DNA of 64,000 nucleotides from sequence record MZ443780.1; one strand, 5' to 3'. The notes under the pieces were generated by a model. It was not told the DNA's origin, did no database searches, and saw only the letters and a program-made list of their open reading frames with translations. Both the position numbers and the translations under genes were made by a program. This document shows positions 19,659-62,916 of this stretch, in pieces. Positions within the stretch are counted from its first letter, which is position 1, and every line of letters begins with the position of its first letter.

Positions 19659-19917
19659 CTCTATCCTCTAAAACAAATTGTAGTGTGCCCTGTATATTTA
19701 CAGCATTCAGGCGCTTACCTGTCTGTGCAATCAGGCCATTCAACACGCCGATAAGATCAGCGCTGTAGCAGTTCTCAGCAATCTTGTGGACGTACATATC
19801 GTCAGGCACATCGCCTGGGTTAAGCTGCCAAGCAGTACGCAAGGCAGCTCCCATGAAGGCCGGACGCTCCACCAGATGCTTGTTCAAAAACGAACATACA
19901 TCTTCGGCAGTTATCAT
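19624..19917 (-). CDS. Hypothetical protein
   Basis: 97 aa, ATGA overlap with the polymerase stop. Confidence 0.5.
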   Translation of the reverse strand: MITAEDVCSFLNKHLVERPAFMGAALRTAWQLNPGDVPDDMYVHKIAENCYSADLIGVLNGLIAQTGKRLNAVNIQGTLQFVLEDRDEDLSITEEPR

Positions 19918-21215
19918 TTCTTCGTAATCCCCTTGAGCGCCAGTTTGAGCATCGACTTGCTGATTTTGATTTTCTTCTGAGGCGCAGCGCCACCAGCAGC
20001 GGCAGCCGCTTTCTTCGCTTTCTCCTCAGCTTCATACTTCTCGAACGTTTTAGTGTTCTCAGGAAGTTCAGCAAGCCACTCTTTGATGTTCTTCTTGTCT
20101 TTGTTGGTGAGAGGATTGACTTTGTCCATAGAACGAATTTTGATATCGTTCGCCCAAAGCTGTTTCTTCATCCACTCAGACATAAGATGGTACTGGTCTT
20201 CCATGATAGAGTCCAGCGTCTTATCGACGTCGAGGTCTGTCTCACCGAGTTCATCACGTTTAATCTCAAGGCCATCTTTGATGATCTTCTTGAGCTGCAC
20301 GTAAGAGAAGTTCCAGCTCTGCACATCTTTCTCGGACGCACCGATTTCAAAGTCGATTTCAGGCACGGACGTGAACTCAAACCCTGCATGACGTTTCTGT
20401 ACGACTTCGACCACTGCGCTGGTCATCGCACGTTCGATCATATCGAGCGCAAGGAAGATCCATTTGTAATCGCAGTCAACGGTCAAGGAGTCGTGTACCG
20501 ATACGTTCATGTCGAAGTCTGGGTACTCGCCATTTGCTTTGAAGTATTCGTACTTCATGCGGTCAAGAATACGAATCGCACTCATCATCAGGTCAGAACC
20601 AAAACCCTGAACTGGACTGTTTACCGCGCGACGATCACACGCAGCATGAACCATGTTGGCTTCTTTGTGTGACTCAGGCAGCATCAAGCCCCAGAGATGA
20701 CGACGACGACCAACAGGCGATTCAACAAAGAAGTTCTCATGTGCAAACTTCTTAATCTTGTCGAACCACTTCAAGCCAACAGGGAATCGCGTAAGGAACT
20801 TGCCTTTGATTTCTGCAATCTCAGACACTTCACGACCTGTAGACTTCGCAAGACCTTTATCACCCTGCTGATAAATCAAGCCGAAGATAACTGTCTTAAC
20901 CGCGTTACGTACGGACTTGGTTACGTCCATTACGTTTGGAATGCCGAAGAAGTATGCGGCGTTGATTTTGTGAACGTCACCCTCTGCTTCGACGCGGTGT
21001 TCGATCCACGGGTCAGGCACTGTACGATAGCGATGACGCAACGCACGACCCTGTTCGAATACGTCTGCAACACCCTGGTCACCAGAGATGATTGACCAAC
21101 CACGAACTTCGTGCGCTGAGTAGTCGACCTTGATAAGCAGGCGATTCTTACGCGCAATCAGAATACGTTTGATCAGTTTACCCATCTCACTACGCGACGG
21201 TACCTGCTGGAGATT
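19914..21215 (-). CDS. Family A DNA polymerase, exon 2 (polymerase domain)
   Basis: Frame extends upstream of the listed ATG to NLQQVPSRSE; motif A DYSAHEVR, motif B RNAVKTVIFGLIYQ, RRAVNSPVQG, motif C SVHDS. Confidence 0.92.
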   Translation of the reverse strand, partial: NLQQVPSRSEMGKLIKRILIARKNRLLIKVDYSAHEVRGWSIISGDQGVADVFEQGRALRHRYRTVPDPWIEHRVEAEGDVHKINAAYFFGIPNVMDVTKSVRNAVKTVIFGLIYQQGDKGLAKSTGREVSEIAEIKGKFLTRFPVGLKWFDKIKKFAHENFFVESPVGRRRHLWGLMLPESHKEANMVHAACDRRAVNSPVQGFGSDLMMSAIRILDRMKYEYFKANGEYPDFDMNVSVHDSLTVDCDYKWIFLALDMIERAMTSAVVEVVQKRHAGFEFTSVPEIDFEIGASEKDVQSWNFSYVQLKKIIKDGLEIKRDELGETDLDVDKTLDSIMEDQYHLMSEWMKKQLWANDIKIRSMDKVNPLTNKDKKNIKEWLAELPENTKTFEKYEAEEKAKKAAAAAGGAAPQKKIKISKSMLKLALKGITKK

Positions 21216-22435
21216 TTTGTGGTCTTAAAACGTGTTCGCAACACACGCCCTGATGATGCGAGTACCAACATTCCTCGTCTTACACACCACCACACCGTTT
21301 ACCGATGTGGAAGAGACTATATCAAGTCCGCTATTCAGTAATAGAAAACAAATGCTCACCTGAACCAATCATGCGTATTGTAGTTTTACCTTTCTTGATT
21401 TTCTTAATCTTCTGTTTCGGAAAATCATTTCTCGGTTTATCATCAATACCCAGCAGGTCACACACGTTGTTGTAATGAATCGCTGCGGCTTCTTCTGTAT
21501 CAAAGCGTCTACGACCATAAACAATTTTGTTGTGTCGCACTAAGCCTACCCACTTCTGACGACCTTTCTCAAAGAGAACACCAAAGTATTTCGATGCACC
21601 TTTTCGTTGTCCGCCAATCTTCTTGCCTGATGTAGGTTTATTATATACGTTCAAACCCATCTCTCTGGCGTGGAGAATATTACGTGAGTTACTGCACCAC
21701 TCTAGGTTATCAACACAGTTGTTTGTTTTGATACCATCAAGATGGTTTACCATCGGCTTTGTTTCAGGATGTTTGTTTTTCTTCCAAACAGTAGCAACTA
21801 CGCGATGCGCAAGAGGTCCGCGAATCCATAAAGATAAATAACCTTTTGGATGTTTACGTCCGATCGTCAGGCGCACTTCACCTTCGTCACTAACAATCAA
21901 GAACACACCTGTCTTATGGACAAAGATGTTCTCTCTATAGGACTTCCAACATTTAAAGTTGGTTAGTGAATACGCAGTGCTTACGTTTGGATGATCGTGA
22001 AGGAATTTAGGCGCCCATGCTTCGATATAGTGTTTCAGATATTTCGGCAAAGGATGCTGCTCTGCAACGAGCGCAATAGCACGGCCTTTCTTCACGGTCG
22101 TTTTTACTTTTTTCATATTTGCCTCATGGAACCTTTTGTCGATGATACATTTTAATTATCGTCAACAAGTCCCAAATGAGGTATTTCTGAAAATATTCTG
22201 AATAGACTTATTCTCTCGTCTGACGCGCTTGCATATCAGACTCAAACGAGAACTTAGGACGCTACCATTTCGCGTGACCATTTGCTTGTCACTCTACTCC
22301 CTCGCGGGATAGTCGTTAGGCTTTTAGTCGTTTCCGACATTTAGCACGGTAGGTTCTCCTTACACATTCGCTGCGTAAGGCTCTTCCCCGTTTAGGTAGC
22401 TTTCGACATGCAGTTTCCTACATGAAGCCCAATCT
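21216..22435 (-). mobile_element. Group I intron (td/SPO1-like IA2 type), 1220 nt, homing endonuclease ORF in the P8 loop
   Basis: P CTAAACGGGGAA (22384-95), Q CCGTGCTAAAT (22339-49), R CCTAACGACTAT (22309-20), S TTGATATAGTCT (about 21313-24); P3 GCTACC/GGTAGC; IGS AGATTGGG pairs with the ligated exons CCT|AATCT; splicing restores GRTSASDP|NLQQVP. Confidence 0.92.
21331..22116 (-). CDS. Intron-encoded HNH homing endonuclease with a C-terminal AP2-like domain
   Basis: [24 protein letters not shown] (HNH) and [26 protein letters not shown] (AP2-like). Confidence 0.85.
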
Positions 22436-24307
22436 AGGATCACTAGCGCTTGTACGACCCGTTACAACGCCGAGATAACCGTACGTTGGTCGAATAGATC
22501 TGTCGTGTTTGAAGTCTTCTGACTCGCCCCAGAGTTTAAGCAGACTGTTAACGTAGGCGTTCTTGAGCTTGTACGCTTTTCCGAGCTTCGAGTAGAGAGC
22601 AACAAGCGGTATATCTGCATACGCCGCTTGGAAGTCTTTGTCGAGCTTGCCCGTCTTCTTACCGTTCTCACGTAACTGCTCCCCTTCTTTCAGAGGCTTG
22701 AGTTTCATTACATCGAAGAACAGGATTTGTTTATGCTCCGACTTCGACATATCGAACTTGGTGACCTCGACTTTGCCCATAAGACCCATCTTAGGAACAT
22801 TGTCGTCTTTGCAGATCATCTTGTTCGCAGCCTTAACTTCAGGGCTGTTCATGAACTCACGCTCTACGTTTCGAATCTCCTCGTTGATTGGGGAGTTCGG
22901 AAGGTTGAGCTTAAACAGGTAGTCGATATCAGCGCCAGCACCTGTTGTCTCAAGTATCGAGAACGCATGAATCTGGTCTGAGATTTGTTCACTGACCATA
23001 GACTCATACTTACCGTACTTGATATCGTTCGCTCGAAGCATCTGCTTCTCTGCAATGCGGAACGGCACAATAACGTCGAGTCCAGCATACTCTTGCACGT
23101 TTTCATCAAGGTCAACGTCTGCAATCGTCGCTCGCATCTCTTTACCGAACGATACTTCGTGATACACGGTACAACCGAACTGCATCGTCAGGTTCGCCAA
23201 GTTGTAGTAACCGTTACCGGTGACGTTCAACAACGACTTGGCGTTTTCATCAAAGGCAAACTCACCCGCCTGAATATCCCAAACGTTTGCTGCGTAACTA
23301 CGAATGCCGAAGTTAGAGCGCATTACGTTCAGGTCGAACTTCGCGTTGGTATAGATTTGATACTTGTTCGTGTTCTCCTCAAAGAAGTCACGGAACAGTT
23401 CTTTCACCTTACGCAGTTCTTTCGGACTGAATGGGCTGTCTCTGTGATAGACAGGTATGACATACGCTTTCTTACCGTTGTCCGATAACTGCACCGTCAG
23501 AATCTTGTTCTTGATACGGTTCAGGTTCTCGGTTTCGGTATCGACTGCAACCTTCTTGGAACGCTTCATACGCTTCAAGATTTTCTCAAGCTGCTTGACC
23601 TTCGTTACATACACGAGGTCCCAGTTACGCTTCTTACCGCACGTAACTTCGTCGATCTTATAGCGCATTCCCTTGTTCAGCCACGGCAACATCCAACGTG
23701 CCATGTAACCCAGAGTGTACGATGAACCTGCAATGTGCATCGGGTTCAACACTGTGTGGTAGCTGACGTTCGGTAGATGAATGAAGCTGTGCTTCTTCCC
23801 ATCGAACTTTAACTTCGTTGGGATTTCAACACCGTACCAGTGCTCGTAGTGCTCTTTCGAGAACTGGATCTTCTCGTTGTTCAACGCTTTGAACGGCGCT
23901 TTACCAAACGTCAGGACGTAATCAGGTTTATAGTCTACGATGATTTCTCGCAGACGATTGGCGAACGCGGCATCAGCATCTTCCTTGAACTGCTCACCCT
24001 TGTCATACGTCTTGAACATGTTATACGAGATAACAAGGAAGCTCCAGTCATCGAGAGTAGTCTTTGTCGGGAAGACGTCCTCAAGATACTGCATCTGGTT
24101 CAAGAACAACTCACCTTCTGTCGAGGTAAAGATTCTACCACTACGCAGGTCTTCTGTCGGCATATGATCAAGGACGAGTAGCGCTTTACCGCCTTTAGCG
24201 CTTTTGCTTACGCTTTTTAATAATCGAACACCGTCATAGGTCTGCATGTCTGCAAACTGCTCTGGCGGGTCGAAGTCGAGTGAAATAAACTTGGGTTTGT
24301 TCACCAT
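22436..24307 (-). CDS. Family A DNA polymerase, exon 1 (UDG-like domain, 3'-5' exonuclease, start of the polymerase domain)
   Basis: VAVDTET (ExoI), NAKFDL (ExoII), YAGLD (ExoIII); ends at VVTGRTSASDP. Predicted spliced product is 624+433 = 1057 aa. Confidence 0.9.
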
Positions 24308-24342
24308 CTAGTCCTATCAGTGCGTCACATATTGATGGCTGT

Positions 24343-24351
24343 TATTTACAG
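24343..24351 (-). promoter_or_regulatory. Motif A, CTGTAAATA (copy upstream of the DNA polymerase; others at 13855, 19695, 33536, 40881, 43421, 52563, 55652; variants at 55996 and 62456)
   Basis: Recurs mostly 22-39 nt upstream of start codons, often just after a terminator. Confidence 0.7.
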
Positions 24352-24363
24352 ATTCCGAAAAGC

Positions 24364-24390
24364 AAAAAGGGCAGCCGAAGCCACCCTTTT
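24364..24390 (-). terminator. Terminator of the repeated family
   Basis: AAAGGGTGGC-TTCG-GCTGCCCTTTTT. Confidence 0.85.
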
Positions 24391-24399
24391 GGATTAAAT

Positions 24400-38836: not shown

Positions 38837-38942
38837 CCTCTACTGGGTCTAGTAATCATATCGAATAAAAATTAGCGACTAAGGGCTGATTTGTCCGATA
38901 TAGTGTTCGCATAGACTTTACAAATTTCAGGCGCATGAATGC

Positions 38943-39655: not shown

Positions 39656-39774
39656 GATTATATCCTCAAGTTACAATTGAACTTTCGTCCTGTAGGACAT
39701 TAAGTTTTTGAAATCAGCATGTAAAAATTAGTATAATCCCTGAGACTTTTATCAGGAAATTTCCTAAATCTTTT

Positions 39775-40854: not shown

Positions 40855-40928
40855 TACAATCCACAGGTTTCTTTGTAGGCTATTTACAGATCATAGGTGA
40901 CTGTAAGGTAGGTTTGTGATCAGAAATG

Positions 40929-40955
40929 AAAAGAGGCAGCCGAAGCCACCTCTTT
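40929..40955 (-). terminator. Terminator of the repeated family
   Basis: AAAGAGGTGGC-TTCG-GCTGCCTCTTTT. Confidence 0.85.
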
Positions 40956-40958
40956 GAT

Positions 40959-52526: not shown

Positions 52527-52589
52527 TGCAATGTACCTATATTTGGTCTAAATGATATATGCTATTTACAGTTTTAAGGTGTATAGACG

Positions 52590-52620
52590 AAAAGAAGGGC
52601 CACCCTTAGGCAGCCCCTTC
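52590..52620 (-). terminator. Rho-independent terminator spanning a stop codon
   Basis: GAAGGGGCTGCC-TAAG-GGTGGCCCTTC followed by TTTT. Confidence 0.7.
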
Positions 52621-54234: not shown

Positions 54235-54301
54235 TGTTTGTCTTCCAGCGCTATTGTGAATTGTAGTCTAAAATTAGCGTCCCATCAGACATTTCTGAAA
54301 T

Positions 54302-54333
54302 AAAAATGGGCAGCTAAATAGCCACCCATTTTT
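54302..54333 (-). terminator. Terminator (variant of the repeated family)
   Basis: AAAAATGGGTGGCT-ATTT-AGCTGCCCATTTTT. Confidence 0.8.
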
Positions 54334-54340
54334 CACTTAT

Positions 54341-55615
54341 TTACTTTTTCTTCTTTTTCTTTTTAGGCTTTTCGTCTTCATCGTCGTTGCCTAAATCAAC
54401 CACCAGCTTGCCACTATAGATATCAGACATGGTTCTGGTGATGCAGGTTTCGAGCATGATATCTGCCGGTACGGAAGTTGAGTTGAATGCAACCTCTGCG
54501 TCTGCTAATGCTGATTGCAAATACACCAGACTGACCAGATTGACTTTGATGTTGTCTTTCTTGGTCATATTCATGAACATCTTGAGGCCAGCAGACTGCC
54601 ACTTGTTCGTCTCGGCGTAATGCCCCAGCACACCGTGAATAATCCAACGAGCTTTCGCTACGATGCCGCGCGGGTTGTTTGCTTCACGCAGGAACTGAAT
54701 CACACCAATCAGGTCCATCGAGAGATAAGCACCAATCGTCTGAACCGCTTTCGCTTCCATGTCGATTTCTGGATCAGCAGCAGCGAGTTCGGCAACGAGG
54801 TTCTTATCGAAGTCTTCGCCACCTTTAACAGACGAGTAGATGTTTTGCAGCATGGTGATTGCACCACGCATCTGACCACCAGCATACTCTGCAACCTGAT
54901 GCAGTGCCGCTTCTGCTTTATCACGAGCCTTGTCTTTCTTCGGCAGGATATCCAGCTTGCCGCTAATCTCTACCAGACGTTTGTGAATCACGTCAGTAGG
55001 AATAGGTCTGATTGGCAATTGGGTCATGCGACTGATCATGGTGTTCTTCATCTTCTCAGGGTTCGTCGTTACGAAGATGAAGACAACGTGCGCTGGTGGC
55101 TGTTCGGTAATCTTGAGTAGCTTAGATTCAGCAGCACTGGACATGAGGTGCGATTCATCGAAGATGAAGATGCGGCGTTTGAACATCGGGCTTAACGGTG
55201 CACTGTCCACGATCTTCTGTGAGCCGTCAACTTTACCTGCATCGCCACCCATGTCAAACTCTTGCACGTCCATGTGTGAACCCAAGTCCATCAGTTCACA
55301 CGAACGACATTTACCACACGCGTTGAACGTGTCGCAGTTGATGTACTTCGCCACCAGACGTGCGAACGTTGTTTTACCGCTGCCGAGGTGGCCGGTGATA
55401 ATCATCGTTGACGGAATCGTCTTCGACTTCTGCCAGCCTTTCATGATCTTGACGATGTGGTCTTGGCCAACATAGTCTTCGATACGCTTCGGTCGGAACT
55501 GGTCTGCGAAGTTAACTGTGGTTAGCTCTACAGACTCGGAAGAACCGCTTTTCTTCTTCGACGGTTTCCCATCGTCAAAGCTACGCTTCTTCTTTTTCTT
55601 TTCTTCTTTAGCCAT
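54341..55615 (-). CDS. dnaX: Clamp loader subunit, DNA Pol III gamma/tau-like
   Basis: FRPKRIEDYVGQ, GHLGSGKTTFAR, CGKCRSC zinc module, IFIFDESH, ISRM (SRC-like). Confidence 0.88.
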   Translation of the reverse strand: MAKEEKKKKKRSFDDGKPSKKKSGSSESVELTTVNFADQFRPKRIEDYVGQDHIVKIMKGWQKSKTIPSTMIITGHLGSGKTTFARLVAKYINCDTFNACGKCRSCELMDLGSHMDVQEFDMGGDAGKVDGSQKIVDSAPLSPMFKRRIFIFDESHLMSSAAESKLLKITEQPPAHVVFIFVTTNPEKMKNTMISRMTQLPIRPIPTDVIHKRLVEISGKLDILPKKDKARDKAEAALHQVAEYAGGQMRGAITMLQNIYSSVKGGEDFDKNLVAELAAADPEIDMEAKAVQTIGAYLSMDLIGVIQFLREANNPRGIVAKARWIIHGVLGHYAETNKWQSAGLKMFMNMTKKDNIKVNLVSLVYLQSALADAEVAFNSTSVPADIMLETCITRTMSDIYSGKLVVDLGNDDEDEKPKKKKKKK

Positions 55616-55669
55616 TGTACTTTGCCCTTTAGTCTAATGCGTTACATCAGGTATTTACAGTATTTAGAC

Positions 55670-55705
55670 AAAAAGAAAGGACCACATCCAAAATGGAGGG
55701 TCCTT
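55670..55705 (-). terminator. Rho-independent terminator
   Basis: AAGGACC...GGTCCTT stem followed by TCTTTTT. Confidence 0.65.
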
Positions 55706-55758
55706 ATGGTGTTACAATAAGTTTGGGATGGTAACGCATCGGCAGTGGGCGCTGTCGA

Positions 55759-55956
55759 TTAGGCAAAGCACATTTCCCAGCGCGGTACAACGCGGAAGAA
55801 GTGCTTAAAGTTGGACGGTGGATTCTTCTTGATTGACTCAAGTTTCTGTTCCACTACGTCATAATCTTTTATGCCACTCTCAACGGTGTGAGTGGTGAAC
55901 GTACCGTCAGCCTGAATCAAATCGGCGACAACACGGTAGCTTGGTCTACGAAGCAT
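55759..55956 (-). CDS. Hypothetical protein
   Basis: 65 aa, GGAG RBS, CTGTAAACA upstream. Confidence 0.6.
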   Translation of the reverse strand: MLRRPSYRVVADLIQADGTFTTHTVESGIKDYDVVEQKLESIKKNPPSNFKHFFRVVPRWEMCFA

Positions 55957-56044
55957 CTATTCTCCTGTGCTAAAATTTCTCGTTCTTCTGAATTATGTTT
56001 ACAGTTTACCGCGAGTAGTCACATAAGAATAAAGTCAGACAAAT

Positions 56045-56390
56045 CTTAAAACTCCAATAGGCTCTCAGTAGAAAACTTATTGGAGTCCACCCTGACAAGA
56101 TGACGGTCCTGTCAAGGTTTTCTCCCCGTGCTATTCAATGCACCAGCACGGTAGCGCTCGCGGTCTTACGCCCTTTGTGGCAGCGAACATTTCGGCAGGT
56201 AGCGTGGTTCGCAGCCCTAGGCAGCCGCTTTCGGCCATTAGCGATAACGCGGTGTTACGCTACTTGGCCTAGGGTGACTCTGGGCCGAGTCTGTACAAAA
56301 AAGAGTTCGGCCTATCCCCAAATTCGGCAAAAGAAATAAGCCGAACTAAACAGTCAGCGCAAACTCCGTATGCACTGTTTTGTACTGTCA
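56045..56390 (-). ncRNA. Candidate structured non-coding RNA (family unknown)
   Basis: No credible ORF; about 7 adjacent stems; G-U wobbles favour the minus strand; CTAATTT motif at 56392-98. Confidence 0.5.
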
Positions 56391-56425
56391 TAAATTAGAA
56401 ACATCCTGTAATATTCAGACAATTC

Positions 56426-57013
56426 TTAGTTCAACATTGGCGTTAGATTTTCTAAGAAGTGTTTGCGATCAAACGACGAAATTCGGTGAGGATGATCGAC
56501 GTGCATGTTCCAGCCTTTGTTAAACAGCAGGATATTGCGCGGCAACGATACGACCGTACCAACACGGGTGAACGAATCACGCACGGCAGTTACCGGATTG
56601 TCATCGACGAGAATCCAAGTACCTTCACCGTAAAGCTCGTTCAGGAAATCAATCTTGTTCGGGTGCTCACGGCTATCGAGGCAGTGAATGTGATCGAACA
56701 ATGAGAGATGCTTGGACAGAGACTTGCGTGTGTAGCGTTCACCTTTTTCGTGATAGCCACGATGCGTACAAATGCCAGCACTGAATCCATCACGCACCAG
56801 CATCGCTACTGTCTGGATGAAGTAGTCACGCATGTTGGCTTTGAGCATGAAGCTACCATCAGCCAGCATATCGACAAATGGTTGCTTGCCGTTCTCTGGA
56901 GTGATGTACGTGTCGGTGCCTGGGTAGATTCCGAAGTTCATCAGATAACACAACATGAAATTGTGGGTATCGAATGCTGTGTCATCCATGTCAAAGAAAA
57001 TGTGTTTGATCAT
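56426..57013 (-). CDS. HAD-superfamily hydrolase (5'(3')-nucleotidase-like)
   Basis: HIFFDMDDT (motif I), ICTHR, LVDDN (motif IV). Confidence 0.75.
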   Translation of the reverse strand: MIKHIFFDMDDTAFDTHNFMLCYLMNFGIYPGTDTYITPENGKQPFVDMLADGSFMLKANMRDYFIQTVAMLVRDGFSAGICTHRGYHEKGERYTRKSLSKHLSLFDHIHCLDSREHPNKIDFLNELYGEGTWILVDDNPVTAVRDSFTRVGTVVSLPRNILLFNKGWNMHVDHPHRISSFDRKHFLENLTPMLN

Positions 57014-60350: not shown

Positions 60351-60848
60351 CTATACGGGTTTGAGTTTCAGATGCGCCCACGGAAAATCTGCTTTCTCCA
60401 GCAACTCGTTTGCAGTTCCCATCTCGGCGAATTTGTCAAACACATGACCGTACATCGCAGCGAACTCGGCATTCTCCAAGTCTGCTTGCCAATCATCATT
60501 ATCGGTCACATGCTTCTGCCAGATCTCATCGTGCAACTTAGAGAAGGCTTCGACACGCTTAGGGTAAAGCAGCGAAAACAGGTCACGGGCGAAACAGATT
60601 TTATACTTGTCCTCAGAAGCAAGTTTCTGCAAAGAGGTCAATGGGTATTTACAGTCAAAAGCAGACAGCACCTCGCTATACTGACGAAACAGACGCTTAT
60701 TCTTTACAGCAATCAATTCCATCGGGCAGTCTTTGATTAGACGCATCACCAACTTCTTGGAGCGCAGTTCAGGCCATTCAGATGGAGGCAACACAGCGCT
60801 TTGGGACAACTTAAACTCAAGTCGAAACAGAACTTCAATAGGGCTCAT
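60351..60848 (-). CDS. Hypothetical protein
   Basis: 165 aa, ATGA overlap with the upstream gene. Confidence 0.6.
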   Translation of the reverse strand: MSPIEVLFRLEFKLSQSAVLPPSEWPELRSKKLVMRLIKDCPMELIAVKNKRLFRQYSEVLSAFDCKYPLTSLQKLASEDKYKICFARDLFSLLYPKRVEAFSKLHDEIWQKHVTDNDDWQADLENAEFAAMYGHVFDKFAEMGTANELLEKADFPWAHLKLKPV

Positions 60849-62422
60849 TCTGCGTCCTCTAAATATGTGATATGGTCAGAGAATGGTTTTTGAATAAACA
60901 GTGCTTCGTCATAATGAATCTCACCATTGACCGTATCAATCAACGCACCATCGTGCTCCAGCGAGTAAATACATTTGACCTGCGTGTCGTCCACAAGAAG
61001 TTTCATCAGCCTGTACGATTCAATGCCTGAGAAAATATGATTGAGGATTTTTCGTTTCCTGCGTTCATTGATTTTCAATTTCTTGAGATCATATTTAACA
61101 CCAGACTGACAAGCAAGGGTTCGCTCTCCGAATTTCGTTTCACGTATGCGCTCGATATAAATATCAGTTAACGCAGACAGCGCGACAGACAACGGGATTG
61201 AATCGTTATTCCACTTTCGGATAAAATCGAAAGTCTGCTTTGTCTCCATAAGCCTACGCAATTGAGCAAACACTCTACCGCGCATTGAATAAGACAACTG
61301 ACCCATTGAGAAGATCGTCGCATAGAAACAAATCTTCGTTTCTGCTTTCGGTAGATTGTTGCGATGAGCAATATCGTCAACGGAAGTCACGCCTTCAAGG
61401 AACGAACATGCGATGCCATTAACTCGAAGCTCCTCAAGTAAAATGTTGAGCTGGCTGCTGGACATATCCCAGTTGGTTCCTATAGCACTGCACATCTGTT
61501 TGAGTTCCGATGGGAACGATTGGAAGCCACCACCCTTCTCAAACAAACGACCTCCAATCTTTGCTAGCCGATACACAGGCATATAGCGAATAATCAGCGG
61601 AGACTCCTGAACTATCTGCACAGGCCCGCTAAGTATTGACTGGAGAGATGCAAGGACATGATGATACTGCCCTTGTGCCCGCTGCGACTTCATGTATGAC
61701 CGTTGTTCGAGATAAGTTAGAATGGGATCAATTCGAATCTCATTCGGAGCCAACTTAGCAAGAACGGCCGTGTATAACTTTTTAGCCTCTCTGTCCCTGT
61801 TTGAGCATAACGCTTTGAGATCATGTCGTGGCCACTTGAATGGTTTTTTCACAGCAACATCTAACATGTCTTTTATCGTTTGCCCGTGCTGCTCGTTTAC
61901 CAAGCGCAAAGGACTATACAGACGAGTAACCTTCAAAAGGTCATCGCCCGTCTTAGGCTTCTCAGGGTACATGCACTCTAACACTTCGGCCCTTATGCGG
62001 AAGCGACGACACACTCCAGGTTTGCCCTTCTTGAAGATATGTCGTTTATGTTCGAAGACGTTATCGAGTAACCATTCTAGTGCTCGACTAAAATGTTTCT
62101 CTGTCTTAGCAAACTTAGGCGCTACTGGGCCCCAACACTGCGAATTTACTCCGAATACCATCGGCAGAACTTTTCGCCCGAACTTAGAGGGGAACGGTGT
62201 CCAAACCTCTCCGAACTTAGCGTTTCTCTGCTGGCTCTTAACAGGCGTATACAGCGATAGCTGCAACACATGCCAAAAGAACAGATTAATCTGTTTTCGG
62301 TATTCAGCTTCATGTTTCTTCGGCCCATCGTACGGACAGGCGAATACTATGTTATTCTGAACCCACTTGATAGGAAACATCTCCTGGTACGTGGGATTCT
62401 TCACCAAATACGGAGAAGCCAT
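60845..62422 (-). CDS. Protein with family-A-polymerase-like palm motifs (TV-Pol-like?)
   Basis: GGRLF..GGGFQ, NWDMSSSQL (motif-A-like), ETKICFYATIF (motif-B-like), LEHDGAL (motif-C-like). Confidence 0.45.
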   Translation of the reverse strand: MASPYLVKNPTYQEMFPIKWVQNNIVFACPYDGPKKHEAEYRKQINLFFWHVLQLSLYTPVKSQQRNAKFGEVWTPFPSKFGRKVLPMVFGVNSQCWGPVAPKFAKTEKHFSRALEWLLDNVFEHKRHIFKKGKPGVCRRFRIRAEVLECMYPEKPKTGDDLLKVTRLYSPLRLVNEQHGQTIKDMLDVAVKKPFKWPRHDLKALCSNRDREAKKLYTAVLAKLAPNEIRIDPILTYLEQRSYMKSQRAQGQYHHVLASLQSILSGPVQIVQESPLIIRYMPVYRLAKIGGRLFEKGGGFQSFPSELKQMCSAIGTNWDMSSSQLNILLEELRVNGIACSFLEGVTSVDDIAHRNNLPKAETKICFYATIFSMGQLSYSMRGRVFAQLRRLMETKQTFDFIRKWNNDSIPLSVALSALTDIYIERIRETKFGERTLACQSGVKYDLKKLKINERRKRKILNHIFSGIESYRLMKLLVDDTQVKCIYSLEHDGALIDTVNGEIHYDEALFIQKPFSDHITYLEDAE

Positions 62423-62590
62423 TGCATACTCCAGAAAAAGTGCTTCTTGCTCTTATTTTTACAGTTTTTGGTGCTTTTCGATCTTTTTCTTGTTTTAGGT
62501 ACAAAACAGAGTCACATCTTAACCCTCACTTCAACACCCCTACCTAAACCTCATGCGGACAAGCGAACCTCAGCCGCCCGCCAGCCGACA

Positions 62591-62701
62591 AGCTAATCAA
62601 CTAGCTTCGCTAGGACAGCTAACAAGCTAGGGCTAAATAGCTGGCTAGATAGGCTTATATTCATCATAGATGCTAGGGCTTTAATGGGTATCTAAGTGCT
62701 A
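62591..62701. repeat. Cluster of GCTA/TAGC short repeats in a non-coding region
   Basis: 8 GCTA and 2 TAGC in about 110 bp, counted by eye. Confidence 0.6.
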
Positions 62702-62916
62702 AAAATGAGCCAAGCGCGGATAGTCGTATGACGCTCGCTACGCATGTGAAATCAGCCGTAGACAGCTTAAAAGCGAAAAATCACCTAACTGATTTCGGTC
62801 AAAAATACCATGTAACTTTTTTCGAAAATCGCACTCGAAACTGTACGAATCGTGAGATTTTTCTGAAAATAGAGGAAAAACCCGAATAAAATCAAGGACT
62901 TTTCCCCCTTTTTCAG

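Follow-up and report, generated by a model that had tools for sequence, protein, structure and literature searches.

The subject here is a 64,000-nucleotide (nt) stretch of phage DNA from sequence record MZ443780.1 (the window; positions are counted from its first letter), and the finding is that its minus strand almost certainly specifies a functional structured RNA, of about 340 nt, preceded by a conserved promoter-like box and lying within a gap of 469 nt between genes (55957-56425). Erwinia phage pEa_SNUABM_3 (MZ443770, Alexandravirus, 266 kb) matches the window with 100% identity, and all genes neighbouring the gap are on the same, minus, strand. A first-pass annotation made from the letters had drawn attention to a row of hairpins between 56045 and 56398, and had taken them for a candidate novel phage noncoding RNA of that strand. 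The complementary words that it quoted are all present and the hairpins are real; the interpretation placed on them is partly supported, the RNA, its strand and its novelty standing up to comparison with relatives and several of the purposes suggested for it not doing so.

How widely is it shared? With blastn the stretch was found in 46 phage records (44 of Erwinia, two of Dickeya), at 70–100% identity and once per genome, and the corresponding gaps of 20 of these were aligned with that of the window (alignment A1, 21 rows). Synteny and profile search gave more distant copies in Rivsvirus pEa_SNUABM_5 (nhmmer E 3e-14) and Yoloswagvirus (E 1e-9), and a reduced copy is visible at the syntenic site of Salmondvirus JA29. 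Some 30 distinct relatives carry the element, always in the same place, and they fall into six genus-level clades: Alexandravirus, Sasquatchvirus (Y3), the unclassified SNUABM_25 group, Rivsvirus, Yoloswagvirus and Salmondvirus. Copies are ~420–430 nt in Rivsvirus and Yoloswagvirus and ~210 nt in the JA types of Salmondvirus, as against ~338 nt in the window. There is one to a genome, its site unchanged, just after a gene for a HAD-phosphatase-like protein that alone among the neighbours is constant across the six clades and past whose stop codon the element begins by 0–30 nt. A DNA pattern of three anchors recovered all the clades from IMG/VR together with two metagenomic relatives; a looser scan of IMG/VR matched at least 120 stretches, and among the matches listed there is one further relative, of Y3 type. 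On metagenomes the three-anchor pattern gave 44 matches, four of them true, with at least three of the four on contigs of jumbo-phage type, and in 185,579 bacterial and archaeal genomes it gave 28, none with the terminal hairpin, which are put down to chance. Plasmids yielded no copy by blastn, nhmmer and both covariance models described below found no second copy within the window, and in PaBG and Lu11, which are more distant again, the site has no gap, the flanking genes of PaBG adjoining as separate genes. The element appears to be confined to one lineage of Erwinia/Dickeya jumbo phages.

The evidence that carries the finding is the way in which relatives change their letters and keep their pairs. 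A hand-specified model of 94 pairs in 13 helices, counted on A1, has 94.7% of cells paired, compared with 30–42% when the 3′ partners are slid by one to three columns, and changes on both sides of the pair in 29 pairs compared with three to nine when slid; none of 500 shuffles reaches the observed values. RNAalifold on the same alignment found 24 pairs with compensatory changes. For the 3′ part of the RNA, here called the core, an alignment of all clades has 92.6% of cells paired, and 19 of its 33 pairs covary (four to nine when slid). The minus strand of the window folds at -144.3 kcal/mol, z -5.81, with 0 of 100 dinucleotide shuffles as good; the figures for the plus strand, again with no shuffle as good, are -124.1 kcal/mol and z -4.28. 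Covariation in relatives, which had been proposed at the outset as a check, is strongly positive. A covariance model trained on cores of the Alexandra, Y3 and SNUABM25 types only gave full-length matches at the syntenic sites of Rivsvirus (E 2e-14), Yoloswagvirus (3e-12), JA11 (5e-7), JA29 (1e-6) and a JA-like metagenome contig (3e-5); nothing was found with it in PaBG or Lu11. The JA29 match is independent of the three-anchor pattern, since that locus was chosen by the similarity of its clamp-loader protein. The core model and a second model, R2, for the 5′ part both match the RNA of the window from end to end. Relative to Y3 and SNUABM25 the RNA is 63–65% identical, in contrast to 37–41% for the 27-nt spacer just downstream.

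Is this an RNA, or could the DNA itself, or an overlooked small gene, be what is conserved? The inverted repeats might act as a replication origin, a packaging signal or protein-binding palindromes, and a structured DNA element had been held in reserve by the first-pass annotation. The locus is beside replication genes, the lower stem of the terminal hairpin, Ht, is an invariant inverted repeat, and the word UGUCUGA flanks the element, recurring after the last hairpin (~56034-56040) as well as in the gap 54235-54340. However, the paired columns hold G-U in 190 cells and A-C in four, so that only the minus strand forms the structure, which argues against a cruciform or another role of duplex DNA; covariation of the upper stem of Ht and of a pseudoknot would, moreover, be meaningless for a duplex. 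The replication-origin idea was dropped as there is no turn of GC skew at 56 kb; neither iterons nor tandem repeats are found, Tandem Repeats Finder returning 0 rows for 55900-56500 even at a minimum score of 30. We regard action at the level of DNA as highly improbable. Chance hairpins in a spacer without function, or an unannotated small protein gene, can be practically discounted. The gap is not literally ‘ORF-free’ as it had been called, for open reading frames (ORFs) of 30–79 amino acids (aa) can be drawn in it, among them an ATG-initiated one of 79 aa on the plus strand (56100-56339) and several shorter; none of these is annotated in the 46 records. Against chance stand the shuffled folds, covariation far above its controls and the decay of the neighbouring spacer to about 40% identity where the element is kept. 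A protein-coding gene is ruled out by the variable columns, which divide by codon phase as 23/20/15 with no 3-nt periodicity, by longest stop-free stretches that range from 56 to 97 aa among relatives, and by tolerated indels of 2, 5 and 10 nt that shift the frame. No gene is called on the element in 44 of the 46 records, and the two existing calls are not conserved. Small ORFs are annotated inside the RNA as Yoloswag gp204 (locus L035, 1803-1967, 54 aa) and pEaSNUABM5_00214 (locus L022, 2630-2755, 41 aa, opposite strand); both lack conservation in other clades and are probably spurious, and the annotation of those two records can be corrected.

From 5′ to 3′ the helices follow one another as P0, H1, H2 with its U-run, H3, the b:c/H5 arm, the Pc/Pd/H7 arm, the pseudoknot, the GGAG word, Hx and Ht (Table 1). 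The universal part is the 3′ core of ~130 nt, whose stems covary and whose UAAGAC bulge, GGGGA and lower seven pairs of Ht are invariant. Its pseudoknot is anchored between UAAGAC and GGGGA with identical topology and different letters in every clade, and has the order of stems, the short loops and the covariation of the H-type; within each clade, 0–22 of 1000 shuffles of the 39–45-nt segment are as good. The sequence of the pseudoknot loops is not conserved. After GGAG, which resembles a Shine-Dalgarno word, there is no conserved start codon, and a covarying stem follows instead of a conserved ORF. That stem, Hx, has a loop that is invariant in the Alexandra, Y3 and SNUABM25 types and is the related CCGACAG in JA types; in Rivsvirus and Yoloswagvirus a like loop, ACCGUCAU, sits in another hairpin. 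In Ht the lower stem, ACUCCAA/UUGGAGU, has the same seven pairs in all clades and the upper pairs covary. The T-run noted after this last stem is borne out as UUUU in the window and UUU in most relatives, and is missing in Rivsvirus and Yoloswagvirus. Of the long arm that precedes the pseudoknot, Pc has been re-made with other letters in SNUABM25, in Rivsvirus/Yoloswagvirus and in JA types, and the H7 loop contains GCUACCUG. Least certain of all is the b:c/H5 arm, where GGCC words permit other pairings; its failures to pair are mostly in five SNUABM25-type rows misaligned by MAFFT. Within H5, pEp_SNUABM_52 has a 10-nt tandem duplication (A1 columns 186-195) that its sister Y3 is without. An all-against-all scan of columns for extra long-range helices or loop-loop contacts gave GC-rich look-alikes only, none of them convincing.

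How does this compare with the stems first drawn? Compensatory changes keep four of them, ACUCCAAUA/UAUUGGAGU (Ht), the CCUUGACA stem (Hx), CCGUGCU/AGCACGG (stem B of the pseudoknot) and GCGAAC/GUUCGC (H7), and a fifth, the UAGCG-UAAC hairpin (H5), pairs in Alexandra-type rows with one compensatory pair only. The stem CCCUAGGC/GCCUAGGG that closes the three-way junction is private to pEa_SNUABM_3, with 53% of cells paired in relatives, and the junction is rejected as a conserved feature. The GGCCGA/UCGGCC and AGUUCGGC/GCCGAAUU stems have zero covariation and give way to H2, a long hairpin that does covary and in which the AGUUCGGC arm has GCCGAACU as its partner. Hairpin H1 and the pseudoknot, with its stem A crossing stem B, were absent from that first picture.

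The 5′ module, H1 and H2, has a history of its own: the core is in all six clades and the module in five, Salmondvirus being without it. Model R2, built from copies of the Alexandra, Y3 and SNUABM25 types, matches Rivsvirus (E 3e-6), a Rivs-like metagenome contig (7e-6) and Yoloswagvirus (3e-5), and finds no 5′ module in Salmondvirus (JA types), PaBG or Lu11. In the loop of H1, GGAGU and the A two bases ahead of it are invariant in the 21 aligned rows, and the base directly before GGAG varies, being C, U or A in those rows and G in Yoloswagvirus; in Rivsvirus and Yoloswagvirus the letters of the stem are wholly different and the loop is kept. H2 differs in its whole sequence from clade to clade and is always a long hairpin followed by a U-run, of 6–12 U in all 21 rows and 5 U in Rivsvirus and Yoloswagvirus. 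A stable G+C-rich hairpin directly before a U-run is what defines an intrinsic (Rho-independent) terminator, and H2 looks like one; a simple scanner missed it, its loop being longer than 8 nt. Other gaps of pEa_SNUABM_3 have like signals of hairpin and T-run after genes. Among close relatives the T-run after H2 (A1 columns 134-139, window 56297-56302) varies from 6 to 12 T. Pairing of the H2 5′ arm with a nearer partner was considered and rejected, as it occurs in Alexandra types only and lacks covariation.

What signals would give rise to the transcript? In the minus-strand gaps, two words recur across the window at 25–45 nt ahead of start codons. Motif A (CTGTAAATA-like) usually follows directly on a hairpin with a T-run, and the genes behind it are those for DNA polymerase, SbcD, sliding clamp and clamp loader; motif B (CTAATTTT-like) precedes three genes with no assigned function and heads the RNA element. 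Neither is in excess over the whole window when taken as a loose pattern, and it is by virtue of position and conservation, that of CTAATTT across A1 above all, that they are read as promoter-like; they are probably two classes of phage promoter. The motif-B site had been placed correctly upstream of the hairpins, and CTAATTT is also in the Rivsvirus, Yoloswagvirus and Salmondvirus copies. The accompanying suggestion that the transcript is ‘late’ does not follow, as the genes behind other motif-B boxes have no assigned function and the nearby motif-A boxes precede replication genes. Phage sigma-factor genes are reported in this phage group in the paper on PaBG (PMC7412058), making it plausible that phage-specific promoter words are read by host polymerase. 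The layout in Salmondvirus, where the CTAATTT box is followed by the RNA and, ~60 nt later, by a strong hairpin with T9, then motif A and the clamp loader, points to a self-contained transcription unit, i.e., a separate RNA gene.

Table 1. Features of the RNA locus and its surroundings, with positions in the window
Feature	Position	Strand	Remarks
Whole predicted RNA, ~338 nt	56048..56385	-	starts just past the promoter-like box, ends at the U-run that follows the last hairpin
Conserved box GAAUUGUCUGA	56415..56425	-	directly after upstream stop codon; 10/11 columns invariant in 21 rows
Promoter-like box CTAATTT (motif B)	56392..56398	-	invariant in 21/21 rows, flanks vary
5′ module: possible closing helix P0, H1, and H2 with U-run	56292..56385	-	model R2
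P0, possible closing helix	56378-56385 with 56293-56300	-	invariant
H1, 7-bp stem and 9-nt loop UACGGAGUU	56355..56377	-	both-side changes in 3/7 pairs; 100% of cells paired
H2, long hairpin of 13–14 bp, variable tip, then 6–12 U	56297..56347	-	both-side changes in 6/13 pairs
H3, 5-bp hairpin GACUC/GAGUC, GGCC-containing loop	56276..56291	-	96% of cells paired, pairs invariant; weakly supported
b:c arm (GGCCA/UGGCC) enclosing H5 (loop ACCGC)	56233..56269	-	84–90% of cells paired
Long arm Pc/Pd/H7	56160..56228	-	both-side changes in 5/7 pairs of H7 and 3/4 of Pd
Asymmetric internal loop GUAAGAC	56163-56169	-	UAAGAC invariant in 25/25 rows
H-type pseudoknot	56126..56157	-	stem A crosses stem B; all six clades
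Pseudoknot stem A	56153-56157 with 56140-56144	-	both-side changes in 3/5 pairs (all-clade alignment)
Pseudoknot stem B	56145-56151 with 56126-56132	-	both-side changes in 6/7 pairs (all-clade alignment)
GGAG, Shine-Dalgarno-like word	56122..56125	-	directly 3′ of pseudoknot; GGGG-A invariant in 25/25 rows
Hx, 9-bp hairpin, loop GACCGUCAUC	56090..56117	-	both-side changes in 7/9 pairs across clades
Ht, terminal hairpin	56048..56088	-	99.6% of cells paired; UUUU after it in window
Motif-A word CTGTAAACATA	55994..56004	-	before 65-aa ORF; outside the RNA, marks the element's 3′ limit
HAD-phosphatase-like gene, 195 aa	56426-57013	-	upstream neighbour; matches part of PHROG 415 ‘polynucleotide kinase’
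65-aa ORF	55759-55956	-	directly downstream of gap
Clamp loader gene	54341-55615	-	beyond 65-aa ORF
Motif-A gaps	24308-24399, 40855-40958, 52527-52605, 55616-55758, 62423-62727	-	recurrent word
Motif-B gaps	38837-38938, 39704-39774, 54235-54340	-	CTAATTT 30–45 nt before start codons

What might such an RNA do? Going by its sequence and that of its relatives, it may well be a stand-alone RNA that acts in trans by binding protein, an account that we prefer with a confidence a little short of even. Action in trans is suggested because the RNA has its own promoter-like box, its own terminator in one clade, and a downstream gene that differs by clade. Binding of protein is preferred to antisense pairing because the stems covary freely, yet a few loops, one bulge and one helix are invariant, and because complementary sites near start codons are lacking in the 64-kb window: there, with at most one mismatch allowed, five of the six conserved single-stranded words have no antisense site 45 nt or less from a start codon, and the only near miss, for the 9-nt bulge word with one mismatch, is at ~46 nt. 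In such a scheme host RNA polymerase with a phage sigma factor would start ~7–10 nt after CTAATTT, and the 5′ module would serve as a promoter-proximal terminator, giving a short RNA of ~90 nt or, on read-through, the full-length one, with H1 the likely site for a factor that sets the choice between them. The ~130-nt core, with its GUAAGAC bulge arm, pseudoknot, GGAG, Hx loop and ACUCCAA/UUGGAGU helix, would fold into a compact domain whose few invariant elements present a docking surface for protein, and the RNA would then act in trans as scaffold or decoy for a phage or host protein, neither as antisense nor as the leader of one gene. Somewhat less probable is an extension of this in which it is the RNA subunit of a lineage-specific ribonucleoprotein and represents a new class of mid-sized phage noncoding RNA: a protein of phage or host, e.g., a component of transcription, translation or replication, would be recruited by the invariant bulge, GGAG, loop and helix, and the infected cell so redirected, with the built-in promoter-proximal terminator timing synthesis.

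Several considerations weigh against a trans-acting RNA. The start, ends, timing and expression of the transcript are what we infer from sequence. Five of the six clades have the terminator-like hairpin between promoter box and core, and synthesis of the core therefore depends on read-through. In Rivsvirus and Yoloswagvirus, where the next ORF is within ~90 nt of the RNA with no promoter box or terminator between, the RNA could be a long 5′ untranslated region (UTR), and the last hairpin of the Alexandra types, with its UUU(U), would terminate only weakly at best. Synteny links no candidate protein partner to the RNA, the adjacent small ORFs being without recognisable RNA-binding fold or family, and the antisense scan covered 64 kb of the 266 kb of phage genome.

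These considerations are in part those that would favour a cis-acting leader or attenuator, in which the structure is the 5′ UTR of the downstream replication-gene transcript and H1/H2 and the core control the share of transcription or translation that gets through to the genes behind, on the model of promoter-proximal antitermination sites or of the autoregulatory mRNA pseudoknots of phage replication genes. A promoter box, a hairpin with conserved loop and a terminator-like hairpin with U-run are the anatomy of an attenuator, and the locus heads a block of replication genes; the nearness of the next ORF in Rivsvirus and Yoloswagvirus and the weak last hairpin of the Alexandra types belong here too. 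Unlike riboswitch-type leaders, however, this one would have a large conserved domain after its terminator, and the gene to be regulated is not constant, being the 65-aa ORF, a transmembrane/coiled-coil ORF (in Rivsvirus and Yoloswagvirus) or, in Salmondvirus with no ORF between, the clamp loader. In Salmondvirus the strong terminator and a fresh motif-A box intervene before that gene, the Alexandra types have a motif-A box of their own before the 65-aa ORF, and GGAG lacks a conserved start codon after it. We therefore reject a riboswitch or like cis-regulatory leader as a class assignment, and consider a leader of any kind unlikely. Less likely again is that the structure is the 3′ UTR of the operon upstream, a shield against 3′ exonucleases or a site of processing from which H1/H2 may also be released as a small RNA (sRNA) with its own promoter. 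The constancy and closeness of the HAD-phosphatase-like gene speak for this, as does H2 being the first terminator-like signal after it, or, in Salmondvirus, the first terminator coming only after the core; yet a multi-helix, pseudoknotted fold of 340 nt with invariant loops exceeds the needs of a stabiliser, ordinary terminators of pEa_SNUABM_3 are single short hairpins, and the conserved CTAATTT box argues for a start of its own. Could the core be catalytic, or a sensor? Self-cleaving ribozymes are common between phage genes, and a compact pseudoknotted core with few invariant nucleotides might be a ribozyme of a new class that cleaves itself to define transcript ends, or might bind a small molecule. 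No ribozyme or riboswitch model matches even at E up to 10, the pseudoknot loops are not conserved, as they should be were a binding pocket or active site there, and there is no constant regulated gene; we hold both to be very unlikely.

Returning to an RNA that acts in trans, is there anything like it among known RNAs? At gathering thresholds Rfam 15, whose families take in tRNA-like RNAs, tmRNA, RNase P, SRP and 6S RNAs, group I/II introns, riboswitches, self-cleaving ribozymes, GOLLD/ROOL and pRNA among others, has 0 matches in the whole window, and at E up to 10 for 55900-56500 there are two of chance level, at 13.7 and 11.4 bits in comparison with thresholds of 50 and 40; ARAGORN finds 0 genes for transfer RNA (tRNA) or transfer-messenger RNA in the window. 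No publication on the element was found, though a fragment of it may be listed in a catalogue of >10,000 viral structured-RNA candidates, all of them 151 nt or shorter. As first proposed, then, it resembles no known family, and the RNA family is apparently undescribed. A group I intron was considered for the element and rejected, the upstream gene ending at its own stop, the downstream gene differing by clade and Rfam giving no intron match; with no tandem direct repeats, so were a type III antitoxin or pseudo-antitoxin and a CRISPR-like or anti-CRISPR repeat RNA. The idea of an antitoxin or a decoy against host defence also finds no toxin gene nearby.

Nearest in kind, though unrelated, are GOLLD and ROOL (PMC12286853), large ‘ornate’ RNAs that are likewise multi-helix, pseudoknotted and carried by phages, and that came to light by conservation and covariation instead of function, without a linked protein partner. 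They differ in length, at roughly 580–800 nt against ~340 nt, and have no similarity to the Erwinia RNA by sequence or model; it, unlike them, is not beside tRNA genes and is restricted to one Erwinia/Dickeya jumbo-phage lineage. For the 5′ module alone there is a likeness to lambda nut/boxB and HK022 put, in that a short hairpin with conserved loop comes after a promoter and before a terminator-like hairpin with U-run; the loop and spacing of the Erwinia module are its own, and Salmondvirus does without it yet keeps the core. The autoregulatory leader pseudoknot of T4 gene 32 (PMC10690425) is also of H-type and likewise belongs to a large lytic phage, on a transcript from its replication-gene region, a likeness of topology only: the T4 pseudoknot is small and lies 5′-most in the leader of a single constant gene, whereas that of the Erwinia phages is within a 130-nt core, with two hairpins after it and no constant gene downstream, and in one clade a terminator cuts it off from the gene that follows. 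sRNAs from 3′ UTRs, of the enterobacterial DapZ/MicL type, share with H1/H2 a promoter-like box at or after the end of the coding sequence, an exposed conserved loop, the first terminator of the operon and a size, predicted here, of ~90 nt. The word that H1 exposes is, however, GGAG-like and not complementary to ribosome-binding sites, a larger conserved domain extends beyond the terminator, and no target for such an sRNA was found in the 64-kb window. Packaging RNA had been suggested at first, and phi29 pRNA is a phage-encoded stable structured RNA that works with proteins; there is no Rfam similarity to it, no packaging genes are nearby and the Erwinia locus is among replication genes instead. 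The packaging motors of myovirus-type jumbo phages are not known to contain RNA.

Lytic jumbo phages are noted for unusual protein machinery, and to our knowledge few functional RNAs beyond tRNAs have been described in them. What is added is an RNA family whose comparative support is very strong, whose pseudoknotted core is well delimited and whose history is clearly modular, narrow as its distribution is at ~30 phages of one lineage. It is tractable to study, as the fold and its invariant elements are mapped and the hosts, Erwinia amylovora and Dickeya solani, can be cultured.

The neighbouring genes say little of function. That for the 195-aa HAD-phosphatase-like protein belongs to no Pfam family, is annotated as phosphatase in one relative and gives no functional link to the RNA; for the 65-aa ORF, Pfam, PHROGs and the PDB gave no relative. 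In Yoloswagvirus the 479-nt ‘gap’ before the clamp loader (L035 2504-2982) has an unannotated ORF that, by eye, resembles the 65-aa ORF of the window and is followed by a terminator and a motif-A-like word. Elsewhere in the window a third long gap (62423-62727, 305 nt) contains short direct repeats, with a 13–14-nt word containing ACAAGC at 62555, 62582 and 62616 and GCTAGGGCT twice; at its end, ahead of the gene at 60845-62422, is a motif-A-like word. On the minus strand the gene for DNA polymerase is divided in two (19914-24307), 22418-24307 corresponding to positions 469-980 of PHROG 17 and 19914-21185 to positions 993-1338. Between them are an ORF-free, well-folding stretch of 301 nt (22117-22417; z -4.15, no Rfam match), an HNH endonuclease ORF (21331-22116) and ~145 nt more, a layout that suggests either a group I intron carrying a homing endonuclease or a polymerase that is split, the HNH gene being free-standing.

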